A DNA stretch of 63,993 bases, the filler included, from Neoconidiobolus thromboides FSU 785 (lineage: Eukaryota > Fungi > Entomophthoromycota): the NCBI GenBank assembly GCA_025603075.1. It is 11 parts of 11 records of this genome, joined end to end, with 100 filler letters (N's around TTAATTAATTAA, not from the genome) between each part and the next. Parts side by side here need not be neighbours in the genome. Positions count along the whole stretch, not along the records: positions 1 to 9,247 come from MU626667.1; 10 more parts are not named here. One strand, 5' to 3'. The notes under the pieces are model-generated. The model made no database searches and was not told where the DNA came from. It saw nothing but the letters and a program-made list of their open reading frames with translations. The translations under genes and the position numbers were made by a program. Shown here one piece after another: positions 1 through 13,070 of this stretch. Every line of letters begins with the position of its first letter. Position 1 is the stretch's first letter.

Positions 1-492
1 ACAATGTCTGAATTTATGGAATCAATACCAACTTTATGGAAAACAGTTAATAAATGGATTGAAACTAACAATATTCAACTACCAAAAGAAAACGCTAAAG
101 AATGGCTTTTGGATCATAAAGGGGATTATAATGGATATCATTTTTGGTCGAATTTTGAAATCGGGTCGTTAAATATGTTACGTAGTCCCGAATATCGAAG
201 CTATTTTAATTATTTGGATAAAAATGGCGGTTTTTACTTTGAACGTTGGGGAGATGCACCTGTTCATTCTATTTTTGTGGCTTTAATGTTAAAAAGAGAA
301 GAAATTCATTTTTTTAAGAATATTGGTTATAAACATGATATGTATGAAAATTGTCCTGTAGAATCGGAGATGAATTTAAAATTGAAATGCTATTGTGAGT
401 CAGATAAATCGGTAAATTTGGGTTCAATGACTACATTGTCCTTGTTGAGGTTAATTGGAGATCCAATGCATGAAAAATTATATAGGCTCTAA
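1..492 (+). CDS. KRE2: KRE2/MNT1-family alpha-1,2-mannosyltransferase (GT15), 3' part; 5' end lies upstream of the window
   Basis: Motifs HFWSNFEIGSLN, YFNYLDKNGGFYFERWGDAPVHSI and IGYKH are typical of GT15; close paralogue of 3225..4480. Confidence 0.93.
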   Translation, partial: TMSEFMESIPTLWKTVNKWIETNNIQLPKENAKEWLLDHKGDYNGYHFWSNFEIGSLNMLRSPEYRSYFNYLDKNGGFYFERWGDAPVHSIFVALMLKREEIHFFKNIGYKHDMYENCPVESEMNLKLKCYCESDKSVNLGSMTTLSLLRLIGDPMHEKLYRL

Positions 493-899
493 CGTAGTAA
501 TAAGCCGGATTTATCTAATCTATTATTTTTCACTGTTTCAAAGATTAAACAATATAAGTTATGCACAATATAATTTTATCTATATTGAGTATAATATTTT
601 TAATGTCATTATATTGTTTATAATTTTATACTTATATTTCCTTAATTTATTTATACAATAGTAGTTTAAGATATAGTTATTATATTCAAGGAAAATTATG
701 ATATATAAATTTATGAACATAATACACAATATCAATGCTGCTTTGGTAAATTCATTTTGAATTAAATACTTGTCTAGAACATTAAGATTTTTTAAAAAAG
801 TAATCATTAAAATTGATTTTTGATATTAAAAAGATTTACATATTCATCAACCATAGTATATATAACTGATCAGAGTAGCTAAATAAAAAATGATCAATT

Positions 900-2617
900 T
901 TAATGCGATATTGTTTTTAAAGTAGTAAGTGGAATATGTTGAAGGAATAGTGAAAGTATTAAACTTAAAGCAGAAAAAGGAATTAACGAAAGAAACATAG
1001 TACGATAAGCAGTTAAATATGCTTGAACGGCTAAAGCATGTTGGTCTGGAGGTAGTGAGTGTAAATACCCCAATGATTCAACAATTAAACTAGGATTAAT
1101 TTCAGGTAGCAACCCTTTCAAGTTTTCAACTAATATATTATTGAATATACTTCCTTGTATAGCTAATCCAAATACACCCCCTATTGTTAAGGAAAAGTTG
1201 ATAAACGCTGTCATAATGGCTACGTCTAATGAAGTGAACAGTAAGTAAATATATAATCAATAGTATAAATTTGTGGTTACCTTCTTCTTTAACAGCAACT
1301 TGAGCAGCAATCAAGCATGTCTGGATACATAAACCAATGCCAATACCGATTATCAATGGATAAAGTATTTCTTCGAACCTTAATACATTACCAGATAACC
1401 TAGCCATCAACGAGTTTCCAATTACTAAAAGCACCATACCTGACCATATAAAAGGTCGATAAAATTTGAGTTTATTAACGATTAAACCAGATGCAGCAGC
1501 AAATCCACAAATACCAACTAAAATAGGTAAAGTTTCAATTCCAGCACTAATGGCTGAAGAAGAATGAATTGTTTGATGATACAATGGCCAATAGTACATA
1601 TACACGAACATTGAAAAACCAAATAACATGGAGCATAAATTTAGCATGATGGCATTTCGAGAGAACATTTTGGTTGGTATAACAGGTTCAATGGCATATT
1701 TTTTTTCAATTAAAACAAATAAAGCTAATACAATCAATCCAAGTATTAAACAAACTATCACTTGAGGAGATGACCAAGGATATTCTTTTCCACCCCAATT
1801 GAGCCCTAATACTAGCAATATTATACCAATGATCAAAGTTAGTGTACCAAATATATCTATCCTTTTCAATGTTTCTTTGATATTAGCATCAGTCTTATGA
1901 TTTGGTAGTATAAATATAATTAATGCAACAGCCACCACTACAATTGGTATATTTATATAAAAAATCCATCTCCAATTAACATAATCTACGAATACACCAC
2001 CTAATAATGGACCAATGACATAGGATAGAGCAAAAGTACCACTGATTAAACTAGTATACCCACTTCTGGTTTCAATTGGGATAATATCTGGAATAAATAA
2101 TTATAAGTCAGCTTGTTATATGCAATATAATCTACAACTTACCTGCAACCACAATGTAAGCCAATGCAATTAAACCACCAGCGGCAACTCCAGATAACGC
2201 ACGAAAAATAATTAAAACTAATAAGTTAGTAGCAGTACCGCAAACAATGGAGCCTATCAAAAACAATGCTAAACTAAATAATAAACAATATTTGCGACCA
2301 AACAAATCTGAAAATTTGCCATATAAGGGCTCAAAGGCTGTCATTGTCAATAAGTAAGCCCCAGCTATCCAAGTCACTTCGCCACTGCTATTAAATTCTT
2401 TAGTTATTGCTGCTAATGCAGTGGCTACTATGGTTTCATCTACAGCAGCTACTAAGATAGATAGGACCAAAGATATCAAGATTAATGTAGTTTTAGATTT
2501 ACTTAATTTGGGAGTAGAATTGTTTTTTTCTACAATGTTATCTGGGATATTGAATTCGTATTTTAATGTGTCGGTCATATTTGAAACTATGATTTTTTCT
2601 TGTTGAATTTTGAGCAT
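900..2617 (-). CDS. DHA2-type (EmrB/QacA-like) MFS drug:H+ antiporter, 3 exons
   Basis: Exons 2617-2143, 2087-1281, 1225-900 (GT-AG introns 2142-2088 and 1280-1226) join in frame. Motifs DETIVATAL, WIAGAYLLT, YGKFSDLFGRK, IGPLLGGVFVDYVNWRWIFYINIP, IDIFGTLTL, LNWGGKEYPWSS. Start may be 2617 or the second Met. Confidence 0.92.
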
Positions 2618-3224
2618 ATTTATAGTTTTTAATGTATTTTGAAAATTTCCCAGATCTTGCCGAAATTTTGGGAAAAAAATTAGCTCAAGTTTTTTGACTG
2701 AAATTGGCTAATTCACTTAGATTTCGGCTTGATTTTTCCAGACAGTTTAAAATTATGATTAAATTTAAAGAATTAAACTCTGGAACTCTTTTTTCAAAAT
2801 TCTTTTTTACACATCGTAAAAATTGTAATTCTTGCCCAAATATTTAAATAAATTTTGATATTCACACAAGTTATTGAATAGCGAATTGTAGAAAATAAAC
2901 CTAAAATATTTTTATCTAAAGTGTATAATTAAAAAACATTTTTAGCTTATGTATTGATTCTAGTCTTATTAAATTTGAATTACATTAACCATGGGTTTTA
3001 GAAAAATTATTAAATTCCCCTGCAAATATTGTTATATGGATATCTAGAAGATCTTGAGTTAGATAAACATTATTTATTAAAATTTAAAAAAAATAGTCGT
3101 TTGATAAAATTACTTAACAAATGAAGCAAGGGTAAAAAACGAGCTGATAATCATAGATACTATAAATACCTATATTCTGTGATAATAGAATAGAACTATT
3201 TTATTTGATTTTAGATTTCGTTAT

Positions 3225-4480
3225 ATGCCTCGTTTCAATACCAATTGTCTCCTATTAGTGGGTTTCGCACTGCTGTGTTTAGCACTTTATTCTTTTATGA
3301 ATAATGTCTATGACTTGGACTTTGATCAAAATAGCATAGTCCGGTTAACTTCTCAAAATATACCAGAAGTCGGGCTCAAACTTTCAAATAATTTATTAAA
3401 TCCAGGAAATGTATTATCACCACAAACAAAAGACTTGGTACCAAGTAACTCAACTCAAGAAAAAGCAAATGCATGTTTTGTAGTCTTAATGAGAAATAAT
3501 GATGTTCATGAATTTCGAAAAACAATGCAACAATTAGAAGATCGATTTAATAAGAATTTTAATTACCCTTATGTGTTTTTAAATGAAGTACCTTTTACTG
3601 AGGAAGTTAAAACTTATTTGAAAGCACAAACAAAAGCTAAAGTTGAGTTTGGTTTAATCCCAAAAGAACACTGGGAAATACCAAGATTTCTAAATGAGAC
3701 AGCTGTATTAGACTCTATAAAAGAACAAAAAGAAAAAGACCAAGTGCCTTATGCTGGTAAGCTGTCCTATCATCATATGTGCCGGTAAGTTTATTCATAT
3801 TTGAATTATTTAAACATACTAATTAGTTTAGATATGAATCTGGTTTATTTAGTCAACACGAGCTATTAGACAAATACGATTATTATTGGCGCGTGGAGCC
3901 AGAAGTTGAATTCAGCTGTGACATCATTGAAGATCCATTTTTATACATGCATAAAAACAATAAGAAGTATGGGTTTACAATCACTATGCTTGAATTTATG
4001 GAATCTATCCCAACTTTATGGTCAACTGTGAAAGAGTGGATAAAATTTAACAATATTTTATTGCCAAAAGATAACCTCAAGGAATGGATTATGGATGACA
4101 ATGATAACGATAAATATAATGGTTTTCATTTTTGGTCTAATTTTGAAATTGGCTCCTTAAATATGTTGCGAAGTCCCGAATATCGAAGCTATTTTAATCA
4201 TTTAGATAAAAATGGAGGGTTCTATTTTGAACGTTGGGGAGATGCACCTGTTCATTCTATCTACGTTGCTTTGATGCTAAGAAAAGATGAGATTCACTTT
4301 TTTAAGAATATTGGATATAAACATGATGCTTTTCAAAACTGTCCAATTGATCTAAATACTAATTTAGAGCTTAAATGTTATTGTAGACCTGAGGAATCTG
4401 CTAGTCATGGCTCAATGCCTACCCAATCACTTCTTAAGTTGCTTGGTGATCCAGTGTACGATAAACTAAAAAGGGATTAA
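3225..4480 (+). CDS. KRE2: KRE2/MNT1-family alpha-1,2-mannosyltransferase (GT15), complete, type II membrane protein, 2 exons
   Basis: N-terminal TM anchor; intron 3785-3831 (gtaagt...tttag) restores YHHMCR|YESGLFSQHELLDKYDYYWRVEP; FWSNFEIG and ERWGDAPVHSI motifs. Confidence 0.95.
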
Positions 4481-5549
4481 GTTCAACATATATTATTATA
4501 ATTTAGTTTGTTGTTTTCTTGTTGTTATAAAAGTAAAATTATATTTTATATTATTGAAATTATCAATTATTTGTAGTTGGAACTTTGAAGCTTAGCATTT
4601 TTTAGAAATTTTTATTTAAATAACTGTTAGTTATTTCAAACATTTCAAATCTCAGTTTGAACAAATACTAACAAAAACTTACAATAGCAAGTTTTATCAT
4701 TTTTTACTTTCTTTTATTAACTTTTTTACTATTTAAAATTTTTAAATCCCAATTACAATTGATAATTATTTTCTTGTTTTTAAAACTACATGATTTCACT
4801 TTTGGTGTTAATTGTACTAAAGTGTAGCATATCCTTTATTTTTTTTTGGTAAATATAGATGTTCAACTGCTGATACTTCTTTTAATAATTAAAGGTGTAA
4901 TACTTTTAAATAGAGGTTTATTTTAAAATCATAATGAATATGACTATATAAAAATACCAGCAAACCTCAAACTAATGATGTTCTCAAAGACATGATATTG
5001 CATTAAAAATTATTAGAAGTACATGCTATTCATGTTTATATAAAAATTTGAAAAATTAAATTGAACACTATGATCTTGGTTTATATTGAAAGTGTTTTTA
5101 TGACACTCATTTGTTTTTAAGATTTTACACAAGTAGAATATGAAATTACTTAAATTTAACTTTATAAGCATCGCTAAAAAGTTGAAATGTTATCTAATTA
5201 TAACTTAAAAGTAACTGAATGGTTGTTGTTTTAGTATGATGTCTTAAACCATTTGTATCTAAAACTAGACTTAATGAATTTTTTGCCAATATGGTTATAG
5301 TAATTATTAAAATAAAAACAAAGAATGAAATGACGAAAAAATTGACCACTAACTTTGCGAAATAGAAGTTTCTACTTTGATTCATCCTATGTATAAATAG
5401 GTTCAGATAGCTGACCCTCTCTTGGTTTATCCGACAACTAAAAAAGTTCAAAAGCTTTATGATTGATGCATAATTTTATCTAAAACTTCATTTTTTTTAA
5501 AATTCTTCACACACCTCTTCAAAACCTTAAAATCTTAAATTTATATACA

Positions 5550-5788
5550 TGAGTTATTAGTTTATACTGGGTTTTTATGTAGGCTTTAATAGGGATAGGC
5601 ATTCTACCTATTATCATGTAAAATAAATTATATGGAAATAAATTCCTTGACTATAAACTAACTGATATAGCCTTGCTTCTTTTATGCTAGGCATTTTATT
5701 TTTGTAACTTCTTTTGTATGATTTCGGATTAGAATGGCTATCCCTACTAAAACCTATCATAAAAACCCCAGCATAAAACTAACAACCT
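5550..5788. mobile_element. ~240-bp MITE-like element with ~55-bp imperfect terminal inverted repeats (unrelated to the 105-bp family)
   Basis: 5551-5605 gagttattagtttatactgggtttttatgtaggctttaatagggataggcattct is an imperfect reverse complement of 5731-5788 agaatggctatccctactaaaacctatcataaaaaccccagcataaaactaacaacct; non-coding interior. Confidence 0.65.
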
Positions 5789-6882
5789 ATAATGTGATGA
5801 TTAAAATAAGTTAAAGTATGCCATTATTTCTTTTTTAGGCCATATAGATGTCAACATTGCCCTACTTTAATTAAAATTCTAAAAATTATAACTTTAATCT
5901 CCGTGATTTACCTAAATCTTAGTAGATTTTAATTATCATTATTTATCGTTTAGCATTTTTAGTATGTCAAATTGAAAATAGATAGTATTTATTATAAGTT
6001 ATACCATTTTTGTCTTAATCAATTCATTTTATTTTATACCAGCGTATCACGTCAGCCAATGTGACAATTATTATTTTGATATAATATATTTTAATATAGA
6101 ATTGAATCAATTGGGTCTACTGATTTACATATTAATACTACTTCAGTACCTATATCAATTCTTAAAGATTTGTTTAATATTGGTGTACTTTGGTTTTACC
6201 TATTTGCTGGTAGCTCTAATATTTACAAAGTGAGGCTATTATGGAATACATCTCCACAAAAGTAGCACGAGTAGTGGTAATGAATAACTTTAAATCCTTT
6301 ATTATATGTACACTATCCATTTTACAATTTGTTTAATCCAAAATATATTGCTTTATTATTATGTTAAATAATAACTAATGTTTAGAATCCCAAGTACTGA
6401 AACAAATACAACTGTTTGTATTTAGTAAAATGCGAAGTTCAATATTTAGTTAGGACATGGTTTTAAAATATAAACAAAGATGAATTCTTGATCTATGTTT
6501 TAATACATATATACTAAAAATAACAAGATACTGTCAAAATAGCTCCTTCAACATCACTTTGATCAAGTTTTTAAATATGTGCATAGACTTTTCAATAAAC
6601 TAAAATGTTCAAAGTTCGCAGTTTGTTGGCTTCTGTACTTTTTAGGTTAATAATTTGAAATCATAAAGTTTATCTATCCATGGTTGCATTTTGATTCTAT
6701 GCCTACCCCAACTGTTATTTTATTTTACTGTGAATTTATAATATCAATCAATAATACTATCAATATTGTTTAATGATAAAATAGCTTATCTGGTTTATTA
6801 CCTAACATAATTACACACAGAAGTCAATATTTTCTTTCATCACCTATGCTTTACTTTATAAATAAGCCATATAGAGTAAAAG

Positions 6883-6890
6883 TATATAAA
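6883..6890 (+). promoter_or_regulatory. Candidate TATA box of the defensin-like gene
   Basis: TATATAAA ~60 nt upstream of the ATG at 6950; weak evidence in AT-rich DNA. Confidence 0.35.
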
Positions 6891-6949
6891 CCCCCAATTT
6901 AAATATAAAATCAATAAAATCAATTCAACCAATTTAGTAATAAATTTAA

Positions 6950-7186
6950 ATGAAATTTCAACTTGCTTTAGCTTTAGTTACCATTGCATCTGTATTTGCT
7001 GCTACTCCAGATGGTAAACTTGCTACCGAGATCCAAGAATGTGGTGCTGCTGGCTCTTGTGAAGGTCCAGGTGGAGGTGATCTTTGTAACGATCGCTGTA
7101 AAAGATGCTCTGGACCAACTGGCATGTATCATCGCGGTGAATGCTGTGGCTGGTTATGGCTTTCTTGCTGCTGTTACTATCAATAA
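6950..7186 (+). CDS. Small secreted cysteine-rich peptide, CS-alpha-beta defensin-like (copsin-like)
   Basis: Signal peptide MKFQLALALVTIASVFA; 10 Cys in residues 31-75 with CxxxC (CNDRC), gamma-core GEC-x7-C and terminal CxC; GC-richer, coding-like sequence in AT-rich surroundings. Confidence 0.85.
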   Translation: MKFQLALALVTIASVFAATPDGKLATEIQECGAAGSCEGPGGGDLCNDRCKRCSGPTGMYHRGECCGWLWLSCCCYYQ

Positions 7187-8094
7187 ATTAATATAGGAAC
7201 CCTAAATTATAAGGGCTTACACGCCTATTTTTATTCATGAAAATAAACGAATGTATCAAAAAGTTTATTGTTTATCTTACTTTTTCTTACACTTCATTTT
7301 AGTTGAAAAGTCAGTGTTTTGTATAATAGAATTATTTTATAACACCTCGCTATAATGGAGCTTTTTTACCATCTCAAATTTAATAATGGTAGATTTAATA
7401 AAAAACGTTATTCAAATTTAATATCTTTTATAGCCACTGTAAAATATTACATAAATGAGTGACTCATTTAAAAGTATGATCACGAGTAGATACAGCCAAC
7501 TTCTCATATCTGCCTACCTATATCAGCCGCTTCACAGGCTCTCGTTATAGATTCAAGTTGTTAAATTATTCAAATTAGTTTTGAATCTCTCTTATTTATA
7601 AAACCTAAGCCCTCCTCCAATATTGTCCCTCTGGCAAACTAGTTTGCTTTCTAAGCCAAAGGACAGACTCGGACCTCATGGAGCCTATCAGAATTTAAAC
7701 TCTTTGGAGCCATACTAGATAAACTCCCCTTTATTGATTTTTTATATCTCATATTTAATGCCACCTTGAACTAGCCAATTCAAGACCTTTTTTACACCTT
7801 TTATTCTAGTCAGTATAGCACCTAGGTCTTGACTTTCATAGGTCTTAAAAATTTTAAAACAAATAGATAAAATAAATAAAGTTAAGCATAACAAGTATTA
7901 TTTTGGAGAGAAAATAATATTTTGACAGCTACTATAACGCAGTATTCTATAGAATGTTACAGTGTCACATTTTTATAAAGATTTAATGCATCTATTTTTA
8001 TTTATTTATTACTGTTGATATATCTTAAAAATGAAGACACCTAAATCTACTTAAATAGAGTTAATAATAATAATCAATAGAAATCCAATTAATT

Positions 8095-8196
8095 ATATGT
8101 GGATGTTTCGGTTTCATCACTTTTTTTATCTTTTAAGCACTATTTGAGTGGAAAGATTGTTAGTAAAATTCTTAAACAAAAAATACATTCCTACAT
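8095..8196 (+). mobile_element. 105-bp MITE family copy 1
   Basis: atatgtggatgttt...aagcactatttgagtggaaag...aaatacattcctacat. Confidence 0.8.
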
Positions 8197-8210
8197 GCTT
8201 ATAATATAAC

Positions 8211-8315
8211 ATAAGGGAGTGTCTTTTTTAACTTCATTATTTTTTCCATTTTTAAGCGCTATTTAAGCGGAAAATTTGTTAGCAAAATTCTTAAACACAA
8301 AAATACATTCTCATA
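8211..8315 (+). mobile_element. 105-bp MITE family copy 2 (tandem with copy 1)
   Basis: ataagggagtgtc...aagcgctatttaagcggaaaatttgttagc...aatacattctcata. Confidence 0.8.
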
Positions 8316-8664
8316 AACTAATAAGAATTCAATAAATGTGTGTAAGCTTTTTGCAAACTTTAAATTTTACTATGATAAATGTTGCTCAAGGCTTTTGAAC
8401 AATTACTACAACTCTTCCATAAAAACAAAAGCAGATACTTAAGTGTGTGTCAACATACTAACATTAAAAACATCAATTTGAGCAGAAACCTTTTATTAAA
8501 ATTTTGACTTCTAACTTATAAATAGGTAGTATTTTTAAAATGCTCTATCATTCAAATAAAAAGGAGCTAGCCAAAGTAGTAAAAAAATCCGAACATAATG
8601 TGCAAAAATCAATTTGATTATTTTTTACTTGTTGGACAAAAATACACCAATAAAATCTACAACT

Positions 8665-8732
8665 TCAATCTTTCCACTCAAATAGCGCTTAAAAGATAAA
8701 AAGAGTGATAAAGCCAAAAAAACACCCCCATG
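8665..8732 (-). mobile_element. 105-bp MITE family copy 3 (partial)
   Basis: tttccactcaaatagcgcttaaaag...aagccaaaaaaacacccccatg. Confidence 0.7.
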
Positions 8733-9247
8733 TATTTGTTTTATGCACTTTCTAATTTAATAGTTTCCTTCCCAATAATACATACATAATTGTGCCATAA
8801 ATGTGATTAAAGAGTCCCTTTGCTATATAAGTAAATTGAACTATTATCATTGGTACAAGTCGTATGATAATGGATGATAAATATGATGATATAAGTTTAA
8901 TAGGATTCAATAAAAGTTCCATGAATTGTAATGTAATATTGGTATTAAAATTCTGTAATATATATAATGCTATTAAAACAACTTGATAAATGATAGTAAA
9001 ATAAAAAAGTGGCACTTTATCATATTAGATTAGTTCTTAAATAGTGGGAATCAATCATAAATAAACATAGTATTTTGTCACATTTAAGTAAAACAATAAA
9101 AGCGATTTTGTTGTTCTTTATCATTTCATTTGGTGATAAAAGTTTATTTATGTTATTAAACGCTTTATCTTCTAGATATATTGATTTATAAATATTAGTT
9201 TTGGATAAAGTTATATAACACAAGCTAGCATCTGATACCTTTATTGA

Positions 9248-12440: not shown

Positions 12441-13070
12441 GATAAGGAATTATAAGTTAAAGTTGGTTGTTTATTTGATTTTATATACTTTTTTTGTGTT
12501 TAATCTGCAATTGATTATTTTGATTTAGACCATCGTTGATTTGTAATTAATTTTGATTTTTTCGGGAAATATTCTGATGGTACGATTTAAATGTGCCTAC
12601 ACTTTAATTACTAATTAGTTTGATAGAGGCGGGTTACGGCTTAACATTTAAGCCAATATCCATAGGAATTGTATAACTGATTATTATAAATTTCTATAAT
12701 CTATTATTTTTTAAACACTATTTTAAATACTATCAAGATATTTTTTTAATTTTTCTTTTTGTTCATTTTTTATAGCATAAAATTTAAAGAATTATAAATA
12801 TTAAAATAAAAAAGATGTTTCGCACTTGGGGGGTTTATACTGTTTCAAGGTTTTCATTTTCTGAAAAAAAGATGTCTCTATACATTAAACACCCTCTACT
12901 TGGAAAACTATCTTTTATGAAATAACAAATTACTAATAAAACTTTATAGCATAAAATACTATACTGATTATACTCTAACAGAGTTAAAAAATCAAACAAT
13001 GCAGGAAACTTTATAAGTTAGAATATATTGAGCCAAGAAACAAGAAAATAAGTTATTGCTTCATTTAAAA

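Follow-up and report, generated by a model that had tools for sequence, protein, structure and literature searches.

A gene for a small cysteine-rich precursor lies on the plus strand at positions 6950–7186 of a stretch of DNA from Neoconidiobolus thromboides FSU 785 (NCBI GenBank assembly GCA_025603075.1). By the window we mean this whole stretch of 63,993 nucleotides (nt), which joins 11 parts of 11 records with 100 filler letters between successive parts and of which positions 1–9,247, including the gene, come from MU626667.1. In the best overall explanation, to which we assign a probability of about 0.6, the product is a secreted, disulfide-rich peptide with the cysteine-stabilized alpha-beta (CS-alpha-beta) fold, one of six paralogues in the genome, for which an antibacterial action like that of copsin would be the most likely role. 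The gene itself is real and transcribed, far beyond a chance reading frame, because it coincides with a rise in GC content, has paralogues, low ratios of nonsynonymous to synonymous divergence (dN/dS) and homologues in other fungal phyla, and is covered by contigs from public sequencing runs. Its products appear to be best described as a separate, undescribed family of fungal defensin-like peptides, outside Pfam, with a copsin-like core of eight cysteines. An earlier reading of the bare sequence (hereafter, the sequence-only reading) had proposed a copsin-like defensin in an early-diverging fungus; the host is indeed such a fungus, a member of the Entomophthoromycotina.

A transcribed single-exon gene

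The gene, its transcript and the segments of its product are as follows.

6950–7186, plus strand: single-exon coding sequence (CDS) with an ATG start, 78-residue precursor, stop codon included (sequence reading, paralogues, dN/dS)
6950–7000, plus strand: predicted signal peptide, residues 1–17 (MKFQLALALVTIASVFA), likely cleavage VFA|A (-3/-1 rule, by eye)
7001–7036, plus strand: short spacer or pro-region, residues 18–29 (ATPDGKLATEIQ), no dibasic site (sequence reading)
7037–7183, plus strand: putative defensin-like domain, residues 30–78, 49 residues, 10 cysteines, net charge -1 (structure model, fold matches)
6916–7262, plus strand: unspliced polyadenylated mRNA, 5' end at or before 6916 (public run contigs)
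6883–6890, plus strand: TATA-like box TATATAAA, 26–33 nt 5' of the contig start at 6916 (sequence reading)
7242–7247, plus strand: AATAAA polyadenylation signal, 10–20 nt 5' of the poly(A) site (sequence and poly(A) loose ends)

GC content is 0.38 across the open reading frame (ORF) versus ~0.25 in the flanks. Three public runs from one study (X1, X2 and X3) each provide a single contig at the locus, spanning 6916–7261, 6916–7262 and 6964–7262, respectively, without any joint. The loose ends of these contigs past 7262 are A-runs, which locate the poly(A) addition site at ~7257–7262, and the depth is zero in the flanks at 6388–6891 and 7312–7563. The runs carry only the label 'RNA?'; we read them as RNA because the coverage is island-like and the contigs end in poly(A) tails. 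Such contigs are what an unspliced mRNA of ~350 nt with a poly(A) tail would leave. The TATA-like box is likely to hold little information, the genome being AT-rich.

The deposited NCBI model of the gene, K502DRAFT_353612 (P0001), is wrong. It is 76 residues long and departs from the ORF after residue 63, where the C-terminal ECCGWLWLSCCCYYQ is swapped for TLNYKGLHAYFYS, evidently via a predicted intron, whereas the run contigs are unspliced and both paralogues and orthologues retain the C-terminus of the ORF. The model of a paralogue on contig C161 (P0004, 86 residues) is mis-spliced in a similar manner. In addition, a 2023 run from another study, with another organism label (X5), contains an identical contig of 154 nt that lies inside the CDS (6994–7147); the peptide gene or the fungus was therefore present in another sample.

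Precursor organization and cysteine pattern

The ORF product reads MKFQLALALVTIASVFA / ATPDGKLATEIQ / ECGAAGSCEGPGGGDLCNDRCKRCSGPTGMYHRGECCGWLWLSCCCYYQ. As the sequence-only reading had noted, it begins with a predicted signal peptide: read by eye, the core of MKFQLALALVTIASVFA|A is hydrophobic, positions -3 and -1 are V and A, respectively, and the hydrophobic leader and the cleavage position are kept in the paralogues and homologues, in all full-length members. The product thus looks secreted. The leader is followed by the spacer ATPDGKLATEIQ, identical in the paralogue on contig C349; the short pro-region of the earlier description is there, but its supposed acidity is only mild (net charge -1). 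The ten cysteines occupy precursor positions 31, 37, 46, 50, 53, 65, 66, 73, 74 and 75, exactly the pattern QEC-x5-C-x8-C-x3-C-x2-C-x11-CC-x6-CCC given previously, and the gamma-core is G63-E-C65-x7-C73. With a net charge of -1 and a pI of 5.6, the window copy is the sole anionic paralogue, the others being at +3 to +5.

The relatives bear on where the mature peptide may begin. The end of the pro-region that aligns with Q29 is KR in Umbelopsis and R in Purpureocillium, Aspergillus and Monosporascus, whereas member P0017 has no pro-region, its leader running straight into A-C. This suggests that, in at least those relatives, the mature peptide begins with the residue that immediately precedes the first cysteine. 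Q29 itself is located two residues before the first cysteine, as is the glutamine of the copsin start QNC, and in the Monosporascus member the residue just before the first cysteine is Gln. A pyroglutamate at Q29, as the sequence-only reading envisaged, is possible; it is not favoured, since the relatives have KR or R at the aligned site or a leader abutting A-C.

Predicted fold and disulfide pairing

The cystine framework C...CxxxC...C...CxC, by which CS-alpha-beta defensins have been defined (PMC5234102), is present in the peptide as C37, C46xxxC50, C65 and C73xC75. The quality of the AlphaFold2 (AF2) models depended on the depth of the alignment: with 16 sequences, the model was poor (predicted local distance difference test score, pLDDT, 55.6) and had copsin as its sole Foldseek match, whereas with 26 family sequences the pLDDT rose to 84.9 (81–85 across five models) and the predicted template modelling score to 0.64 (model mee7d79098693). 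In the latter model, in which residue 1 is Q29, a helix at residues 14–23 (GGDLCNDRCK) is followed by strands at 34–38 and 44–48. In precursor numbering, these correspond to helix G42–K51 with C46xxxC50, strand R62–C66 with C65 and C66, and strand S72–Y76 with C73-C74-C75, so that a predicted helix bearing CxxxC packs on an antiparallel hairpin bearing CxC.

Searches of three structure libraries with this model returned almost exclusively the same fold. Foldseek against the PDB placed copsin first (2MN5; probability 0.97, E 0.09, TMq 0.59, 44 columns), followed by MGD-1, plectasin variants, ARD1 (rank 4), micasin and scorpion toxins. VIA-align, an exhaustive comparison with 48,161 representative PDB chains that is independent of Foldseek, had plectasin (Z 4.7, root mean square deviation 1.8 over 38), copsin (Z 4.7, 48 aligned) and eurocin (Z 4.4) as its top three; next came drosomycin (Z 3.9), NsD7 (Z 3.8), several other plant defensins, K+/Na+ channel toxins, termicin and heliomicin (Z 2.6), and most of the 39 matches were CS-alpha-beta. 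A shape search of the ESM Atlas likewise led to Defensin_2 and Gamma-thionin clusters (TM 0.62–0.64). Because the match lists consist almost wholly of this one fold, headed by precisely those fungal defensins that are characterized as lipid II binders, the CS-alpha-beta (cis-defensin, helix-on-hairpin) architecture is very likely, on condition that the predicted model holds, in agreement with the sequence-only reading: the predicted helix lies on CxxxC, the hairpin on C...CxC and the matches are defensins. A search of a protein-language-model atlas yielded sub-threshold leads only (0.76–0.77; a viral hypothetical protein, a drosomycin-like peptide and a nematode antimicrobial peptide), which we did not use as evidence.

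From the model and the family alignment, we infer a map of five disulfides. The register of the CS-alpha-beta fold implies that the helix would be held to the last strand by the pairs C46–C73 and C50–C75, and that C37 would be bonded to C65. C66 and C74 would form an additional, family-specific bridge across the strands on the outer face of the hairpin, a geometrically natural arrangement because C65 faces C75 and G67 faces C73, which leaves positions 66 and 74 opposite each other and directed away from the helix. Both of these cysteines are present in 14 of 14 complete 10-cysteine members and both are missing from six of six complete 8-cysteine members (Purpureocillium, Clonostachys, Adineta and P0031), which have G at position 66 and Y or Q at position 74. 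Their co-occurrence fits a cross-strand pair and leaves C31–C53 as the putative fifth bridge, involving positions that match the N-terminal cysteine and the CxxxCxxC motif of copsin. Consistent with the C31–C53 pairing, the divergent member P0031 keeps C31 and has lost C53, with a cysteine six residues later.

Old paralogues under purifying selection

The sequence-only reading had proposed a search for paralogues. A search of the assembly (24.6 Mb, 799 contigs) found five further intact paralogues, two on contig C349, two on C161 and one on C346, all of which keep all ten cysteines, as well as a pseudogene with two stops on C212. Across the paralogue pairs (Nei-Gojobori), dS is ~1–2, that is, saturated, with dN of 0.05–0.27 and dN/dS of 0.05–0.19 (0.05–0.14 within the mature domain); the values for the window copy against its paralogues are 0.11–0.19. 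Given the saturated dS and the low dN/dS, the copies are old duplicates under strong purifying selection. The two C349 copies (G000:C349:10786-11036 and 12734-12984; L012 2287-2537 and 4235-4485) stand in inverted orientation ~1.7 kb apart and are 100% identical across 251 nt, essentially the CDS alone, with the identity ending at its edges, which suggests either a recent gene conversion limited to the coding region or an assembly effect.

A conserved family with a patchy distribution across fungi

A word-based search identified 14 relatives, and the family profile, run exhaustively with HMMER against 1.84 billion cluster representatives, retrieved only 17 clusters at E <=1e-3, with six at <=1e-10. 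The named members come from Umbelopsis (Mucoromycota), Collybia nuda (Basidiomycota), Aspergillus wentii and, among the Sordariomycetes, Fusarium oxysporum f. sp. conglutinans, Purpureocillium, Clonostachys, Thelonectria and Monosporascus. A bdelloid rotifer, Adineta ricciae, harbours an 8-cysteine-type member inside a longer, probably mis-modelled protein (P0023, CAF1344152.1); bdelloids are known acquirers of foreign genes. The mature domains are 58–82% identical to the window peptide, except for a divergent metagenomic member (40%), and conform to the consensus xCGAAGSCxGxGGxxLCNDRCK+CxGPxGxYx+GxC(C/G)Gxxxxx C(C/x)CYY, in which C37, C46, C50, C65 and G63 are invariant in all 26 aligned members and CxC is present in every complete one. 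Judging from these comparisons, the family is small, old and strongly conserved, with a patchy distribution over Zoopagomycota, Mucoromycota, Basidiomycota and Ascomycota plus the bdelloid rotifer. One Clonostachys member is named 'Invertebrate defensins family profile domain-containing protein' in UniRef, a name that stems from a PROSITE profile.

Gene structures differ among the phyla; in Ascomycota, many of the deposited models are either cut short or run on through introns. The true structure is seen in the Fusarium gene, which two introns interrupt, one in phase 0 inside the helix motif (CNDR|C) and the other in phase 2 in the c-loop, or hairpin loop; the Collybia gene has one phase-2 loop intron, three codons from the Fusarium one; the Umbelopsis gene, the gene on an unnamed Logan contig and all Neoconidiobolus genes are intronless. 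In fungal defensin genes of the micasin type, fDEF2 and fDEF8, introns have been described in the helix in phase 0 and in the c-loop in phase 2 (Wu, Gao and Zhu; PMC4165938). The regions and phases of the Fusarium introns equal those of the micasin-type genes (compared at the level of region and phase), which argues for kinship with fungal defensins. A text search of the literature returned no paper with the family motifs and none on Conidiobolus defensins; a motif search returned only leech macins (CNDRCK) and unrelated nucleotide primers.

Relationship to copsin and other defensins

The published copsin sequence starts with QNC and contains CRNHCRSC and QCTGFLGTTCTC (PMC4381204, Table 1), in line with the features that the sequence-only reading had cited. 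Copsin, from Coprinopsis cinerea, has six disulfides and is 30% identical to the window peptide over the 44 columns of the Foldseek alignment. The two share the Gln-x-Cys start, the CxxxCxxC helix motif and a spacing of seven residues from the beta-2 cysteine to CxC; copsin C3, C10, C18, C22, C25, C40, C48 and C50 are position-for-position equivalents of eight of the ten cysteines here, and the hairpins (C-T-G-F-L-G-T-T-C-T-C in copsin, C-C-G-W-L-W-L-S-C-C-C here) are alike and of the same length. By contrast, C32, C35 and the tail INPCPRC (C54 and C57) of copsin are missing from the window peptide, in which the Cys pair C66/C74 replaces T41/T49 and an Arg replaces helix His21. Twelve cysteines and a C-terminal tail, the trait of the copsin family, are thus not found here, where there are ten cysteines. 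Moreover, copsin is strongly cationic by sequence, whereas the window copy is anionic. For copsin, both the N-terminal pyroglutamate and lipid II binding have been demonstrated.

Of the resemblance to copsin that had been claimed from the sequence, the predicted fold and the cysteine register stand, with copsin as the top fold match and eight of ten cysteines equivalent. Membership in the copsin family is not supported, given the missing cysteines and tail and a sequence similarity that by itself falls short of significance, with a BLASTP match confined to 14 residues of the hairpin (E 0.053) and a low profile-profile probability (hhalign, below). The peptide probably folds like copsin minus its tail and cannot be placed in the copsin family.

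Plectasin, eurocin and micasin, three-disulfide members of the fDEF families, have the CS-alpha-beta fold in common with the window peptide, and their precursors likewise consist of a signal peptide, a pro-region and a mature peptide; the micasin-type introns in the helix (phase 0) and c-loop (phase 2) recur in the Ascomycota members of the present family. They differ in having three disulfides versus a predicted five here, where an N-terminal extension holds an extra cysteine, and in their conserved His, which is Arg here; the window peptide also has no Pfam Defensin_2 match and is missing the N-terminus GFGC of plectasin-type sequences. The insect antifungal defensins heliomicin/ARD1 and drosomycin have the superfamily fold in common, rank below the fungal defensins and differ in the count and placement of disulfides, without specific sequence kinship. 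The particular resemblance to heliomicin seen in the sequence-only reading is accordingly reduced to the superfamily level (VIA-align rank 20). The leech macins neuromacin and theromacin, which are likewise cysteine-rich, defensin-related antimicrobial peptides, have a local CNDRCK, then GGEC, and a C-terminal CYCYC run. However, macins are longer, have another N-terminal half and matched in none of the sequence or fold searches, so that the likeness is a coincidence of short motifs.

Possible functions

We propose that removal of the signal peptide, and possibly of the 12-residue spacer too, would yield a domain of ~49 residues, which the fungus would release into its environment or into the insect cadaver, where it would inhibit Gram-positive competitors. 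Its target might be a conserved precursor of the cell envelope, for instance lipid II, which the peptide would sequester while the hydrophobic tip of its hairpin, GWLWL, held it in the membrane. Action through such a precursor, by analogy with copsin, plectasin and eurocin, is in our estimate somewhat short of an even chance; three points favour an antibacterial role: the nearest structures bind lipid II, strong purifying selection and cross-phylum conservation fit an invariant target, and the family occurs mainly in soil-, dung- and cadaver-colonizing fungi.

Several results weigh against this proposal. Searches of Pfam with the protein and ten relatives, at E values up to 10, gave nothing relevant, so that the sequence-only reading finds no backing from the Pfam defensin families in any of the 11 members. 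The window protein does not reach the gathering thresholds of Defensin_2 (PF01097) or Gamma-thionin (PF00304), the PF01097 profile has zero matches in the whole genome, and PDB sequences were matched neither by phmmer with the protein nor by the family profile. Alignment of the family profile with copsin by hhalign (P 0.0031, 35 columns) pairs family C18, C22, C25, C37, C45 and C47 with copsin C18, C22, C25, C40, C48 and C50, which speaks for kinship with defensins, but its probability is only 10%. The structural scores, all obtained with a predicted model, are modest (Foldseek E 0.09; Z <5), as is usual for 50-residue peptides. In plectasin, H18 is highly conserved and needed for lipid II binding, with H18A losing more than 10-fold in affinity (PMC11222147), whereas 25 of 26 family members have Arg at this position. 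Furthermore, an anionic peptide (net charge -1) is a less obvious binder of membranes or lipid II, and large fungal defensin-like families have been reported to be able to lose antimicrobial activity (PMC5234102). The lone Pfam match in these searches, to HPTransfase (E 0.24), is spurious.

The same fold could serve other targets. Plant defensins bind lipids through the tip region of the gamma-core. The gamma-core GxCx7C of the window peptide has a hydrophobic aromatic tip, GWLWL. Like drosomycin, heliomicin and plant defensins, the peptide might attach through this hairpin to the lipids of fungal membranes (glucosylceramide or phospholipids), and it would then be an antifungal defensin directed at competing fungi. 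Antifungal CS-alpha-beta peptides typically have four or more disulfides; drosomycin, NsD7 and several other plant defensins come directly after the fungal antibacterials in the VIA-align ranking, and ARD1 is fourth in that of Foldseek. We nevertheless consider such a role unlikely: the best matches are antibacterial fungal defensins, with heliomicin only at Z 2.6, a fungal producer would need self-protection, and the extreme sequence conservation is atypical of antifungal defensins. That conservation, spanning several phyla, could also reflect an endogenous partner, the role of the peptide then being in signalling or development, in association with spores or the cell wall, or in the buffering of metals or redox state. 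Alternatively, the window copy, the sole anionic one, could be a decayed or neo-functionalized paralogue. Many defensin-like peptides of Zymoseptoria are thought, according to one account, to have lost antimicrobial activity (PMC5234102). Decay is contradicted by the dN/dS of 0.11–0.19 against the paralogues and by the transcription of the window copy, and AfusinC has been described as an anionic fungal CS-alpha-beta defensin active against Gram-positive bacteria (PMC6181372); a non-antimicrobial function is, in our view, improbable.

The lifestyle of the producer brings in a further candidate target, the insect host. N. thromboides is an insect pathogen, the invertebrate pathogen Purpureocillium also carries the family, the gene family has expanded to six copies, and scorpion Na+/K+ channel toxins and the NaV1.5 antagonist FS50 are among the fold matches; a zygomycete defensin, licosin, with reported K+ channel-blocking activity (PMC13199095) provides a precedent. 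The peptide might then be a toxin-like CS-alpha-beta effector that acts while aphids and thrips are being infected, modulating the ion channels or the immunity of the host. Yet saprobes and fungi associated with plants also carry the family (Umbelopsis, Collybia nuda, Aspergillus wentii, Monosporascus and Fusarium), its evolution is purifying rather than diversifying, unlike that of most host-directed toxins, and the transcript is present in runs that resemble a plain fungal transcriptome, all of which makes an insect-directed effector quite improbable. Three other kinds of product were dropped in the light of the confident fold prediction: a ribosomally synthesized and post-translationally modified peptide precursor, for which a repeated core is missing; a pheromone, for which there is no CAAX motif; and a hydrophobin, the cysteine pattern of which is absent.

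Few peptide antibiotics of eukaryotes have a defined target that is resistance-proof; fungal defensins such as plectasin and copsin belong to these, and the number of characterized families is small. The locus, which is clearly transcribed, marks an unnamed, mis-annotated, non-Pfam family that is unusually conserved across fungal phyla and has a compact scaffold of, by our map, five disulfides, which is likely to be very stable. The paralogues, six in number and ranging in charge from -1 to +5, together with the natural 8- and 10-cysteine variants, would make a cheap test set for the determinants of lipid II binding in CS-alpha-beta peptides, and the family may yield a new antibacterial or antifungal lead. 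As far as our literature search reached, this would be the first defensin-like effector from the Entomophthoromycotina, and the finding corrects the deposited gene model K502DRAFT_353612.

Grouping with a Fusarium homologue

In a maximum-likelihood tree of 17 mature domains (50 columns), the window copy groups with the Fusarium protein (ultrafast bootstrap/SH-aLRT support 95/86) and not with its own paralogues. The two proteins have in common the block GECCGWLWLSCCCYY and a negative charge, and are 82% identical. The Fusarium homologue was seen in one strain record (L008, RSAI01000016.1, 1380269-1388663), where it lies between hAT and MULE transposase genes. Recent transfer between Neoconidiobolus and Fusarium, which would be a simple explanation of the 82% identity, was rejected because the Fusarium gene, unlike the intronless zygomycete genes, has the two introns of the ascomycete type, along with GC-rich codons, and because the window copy has a leader and a spacer like those of Neoconidiobolus. 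The grouping may stem from convergence, from an ancient transfer or from an error of the tree, which 50 columns are too few to tell apart.

In a broader, rather unlikely scenario, the family would represent a distinct, ancient branch of fungal defensins that recognizes a target other than the lipid II site of the plectasin type with its unusually conserved surface and its unique cross-strand CC/CCC disulfide, the patchy distribution resulting from horizontal spread and not from loss alone. The conserved surface blocks comprise the CGAAGSC loop, the LCNDRCK helix and the YxRGxCC strand, at 58–82% identity from Zoopagomycota to Dikarya. Horizontal spread is suggested by the presence of the gene in a single Fusarium oxysporum strain, in a transposon-rich region, by the bdelloid rotifer member and by the grouping of the window copy with the Fusarium protein. 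If this scenario were true, recognition of a non-plectasin target would represent a new antibiotic pharmacophore.

Genomic neighbourhood

The contig is AT-rich, eukaryotic and intron-bearing, and the neighbours of the peptide gene, two GT15 alpha-mannosyltransferase genes and one major facilitator superfamily (MFS) transporter gene, have no evident link to the peptide. The GT15 genes (Glyco_transf_15, KTR/MNT-type alpha-1,2-mannosyltransferase) form a tandem pair at 4–492 and 3225–4480, ~4 kb apart and 76–79% identical at the DNA level; the former is cut by the contig start and the latter has an intron at ~3789–3892. The MFS transporter gene (900–2617, minus strand) matches MFS_1, has similarity to TRI12-like efflux pumps and is divided by introns into at least three ORF pieces.

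A dispersed short repeat with the core ...TTTTAAGCGCTATTTAAGCGGAAAATTTGTTAG.AAAATTCTTAAACAC..., resembling a miniature inverted-repeat transposable element (MITE), is found in both orientations close to each of the three peptide loci examined: at 8106–8302 and 8666–8719 in the window, at 38–128, 4629–4719 and 5135–5337 in L012, and at 398–507, 977–1037, 4586–4659 and 5055–5147 in L013. Hundreds of run contigs match it at 90–95% identity and high depth, so that it is abundant and probably transcribed genome-wide. Finally, run X3 contains an intergenic contig at 7599–8030 of the window (depth 7), with no ORF of at least 60 residues and with a 4-nt deletion and one substitution, which may be an unannotated transcript or DNA carry-over.

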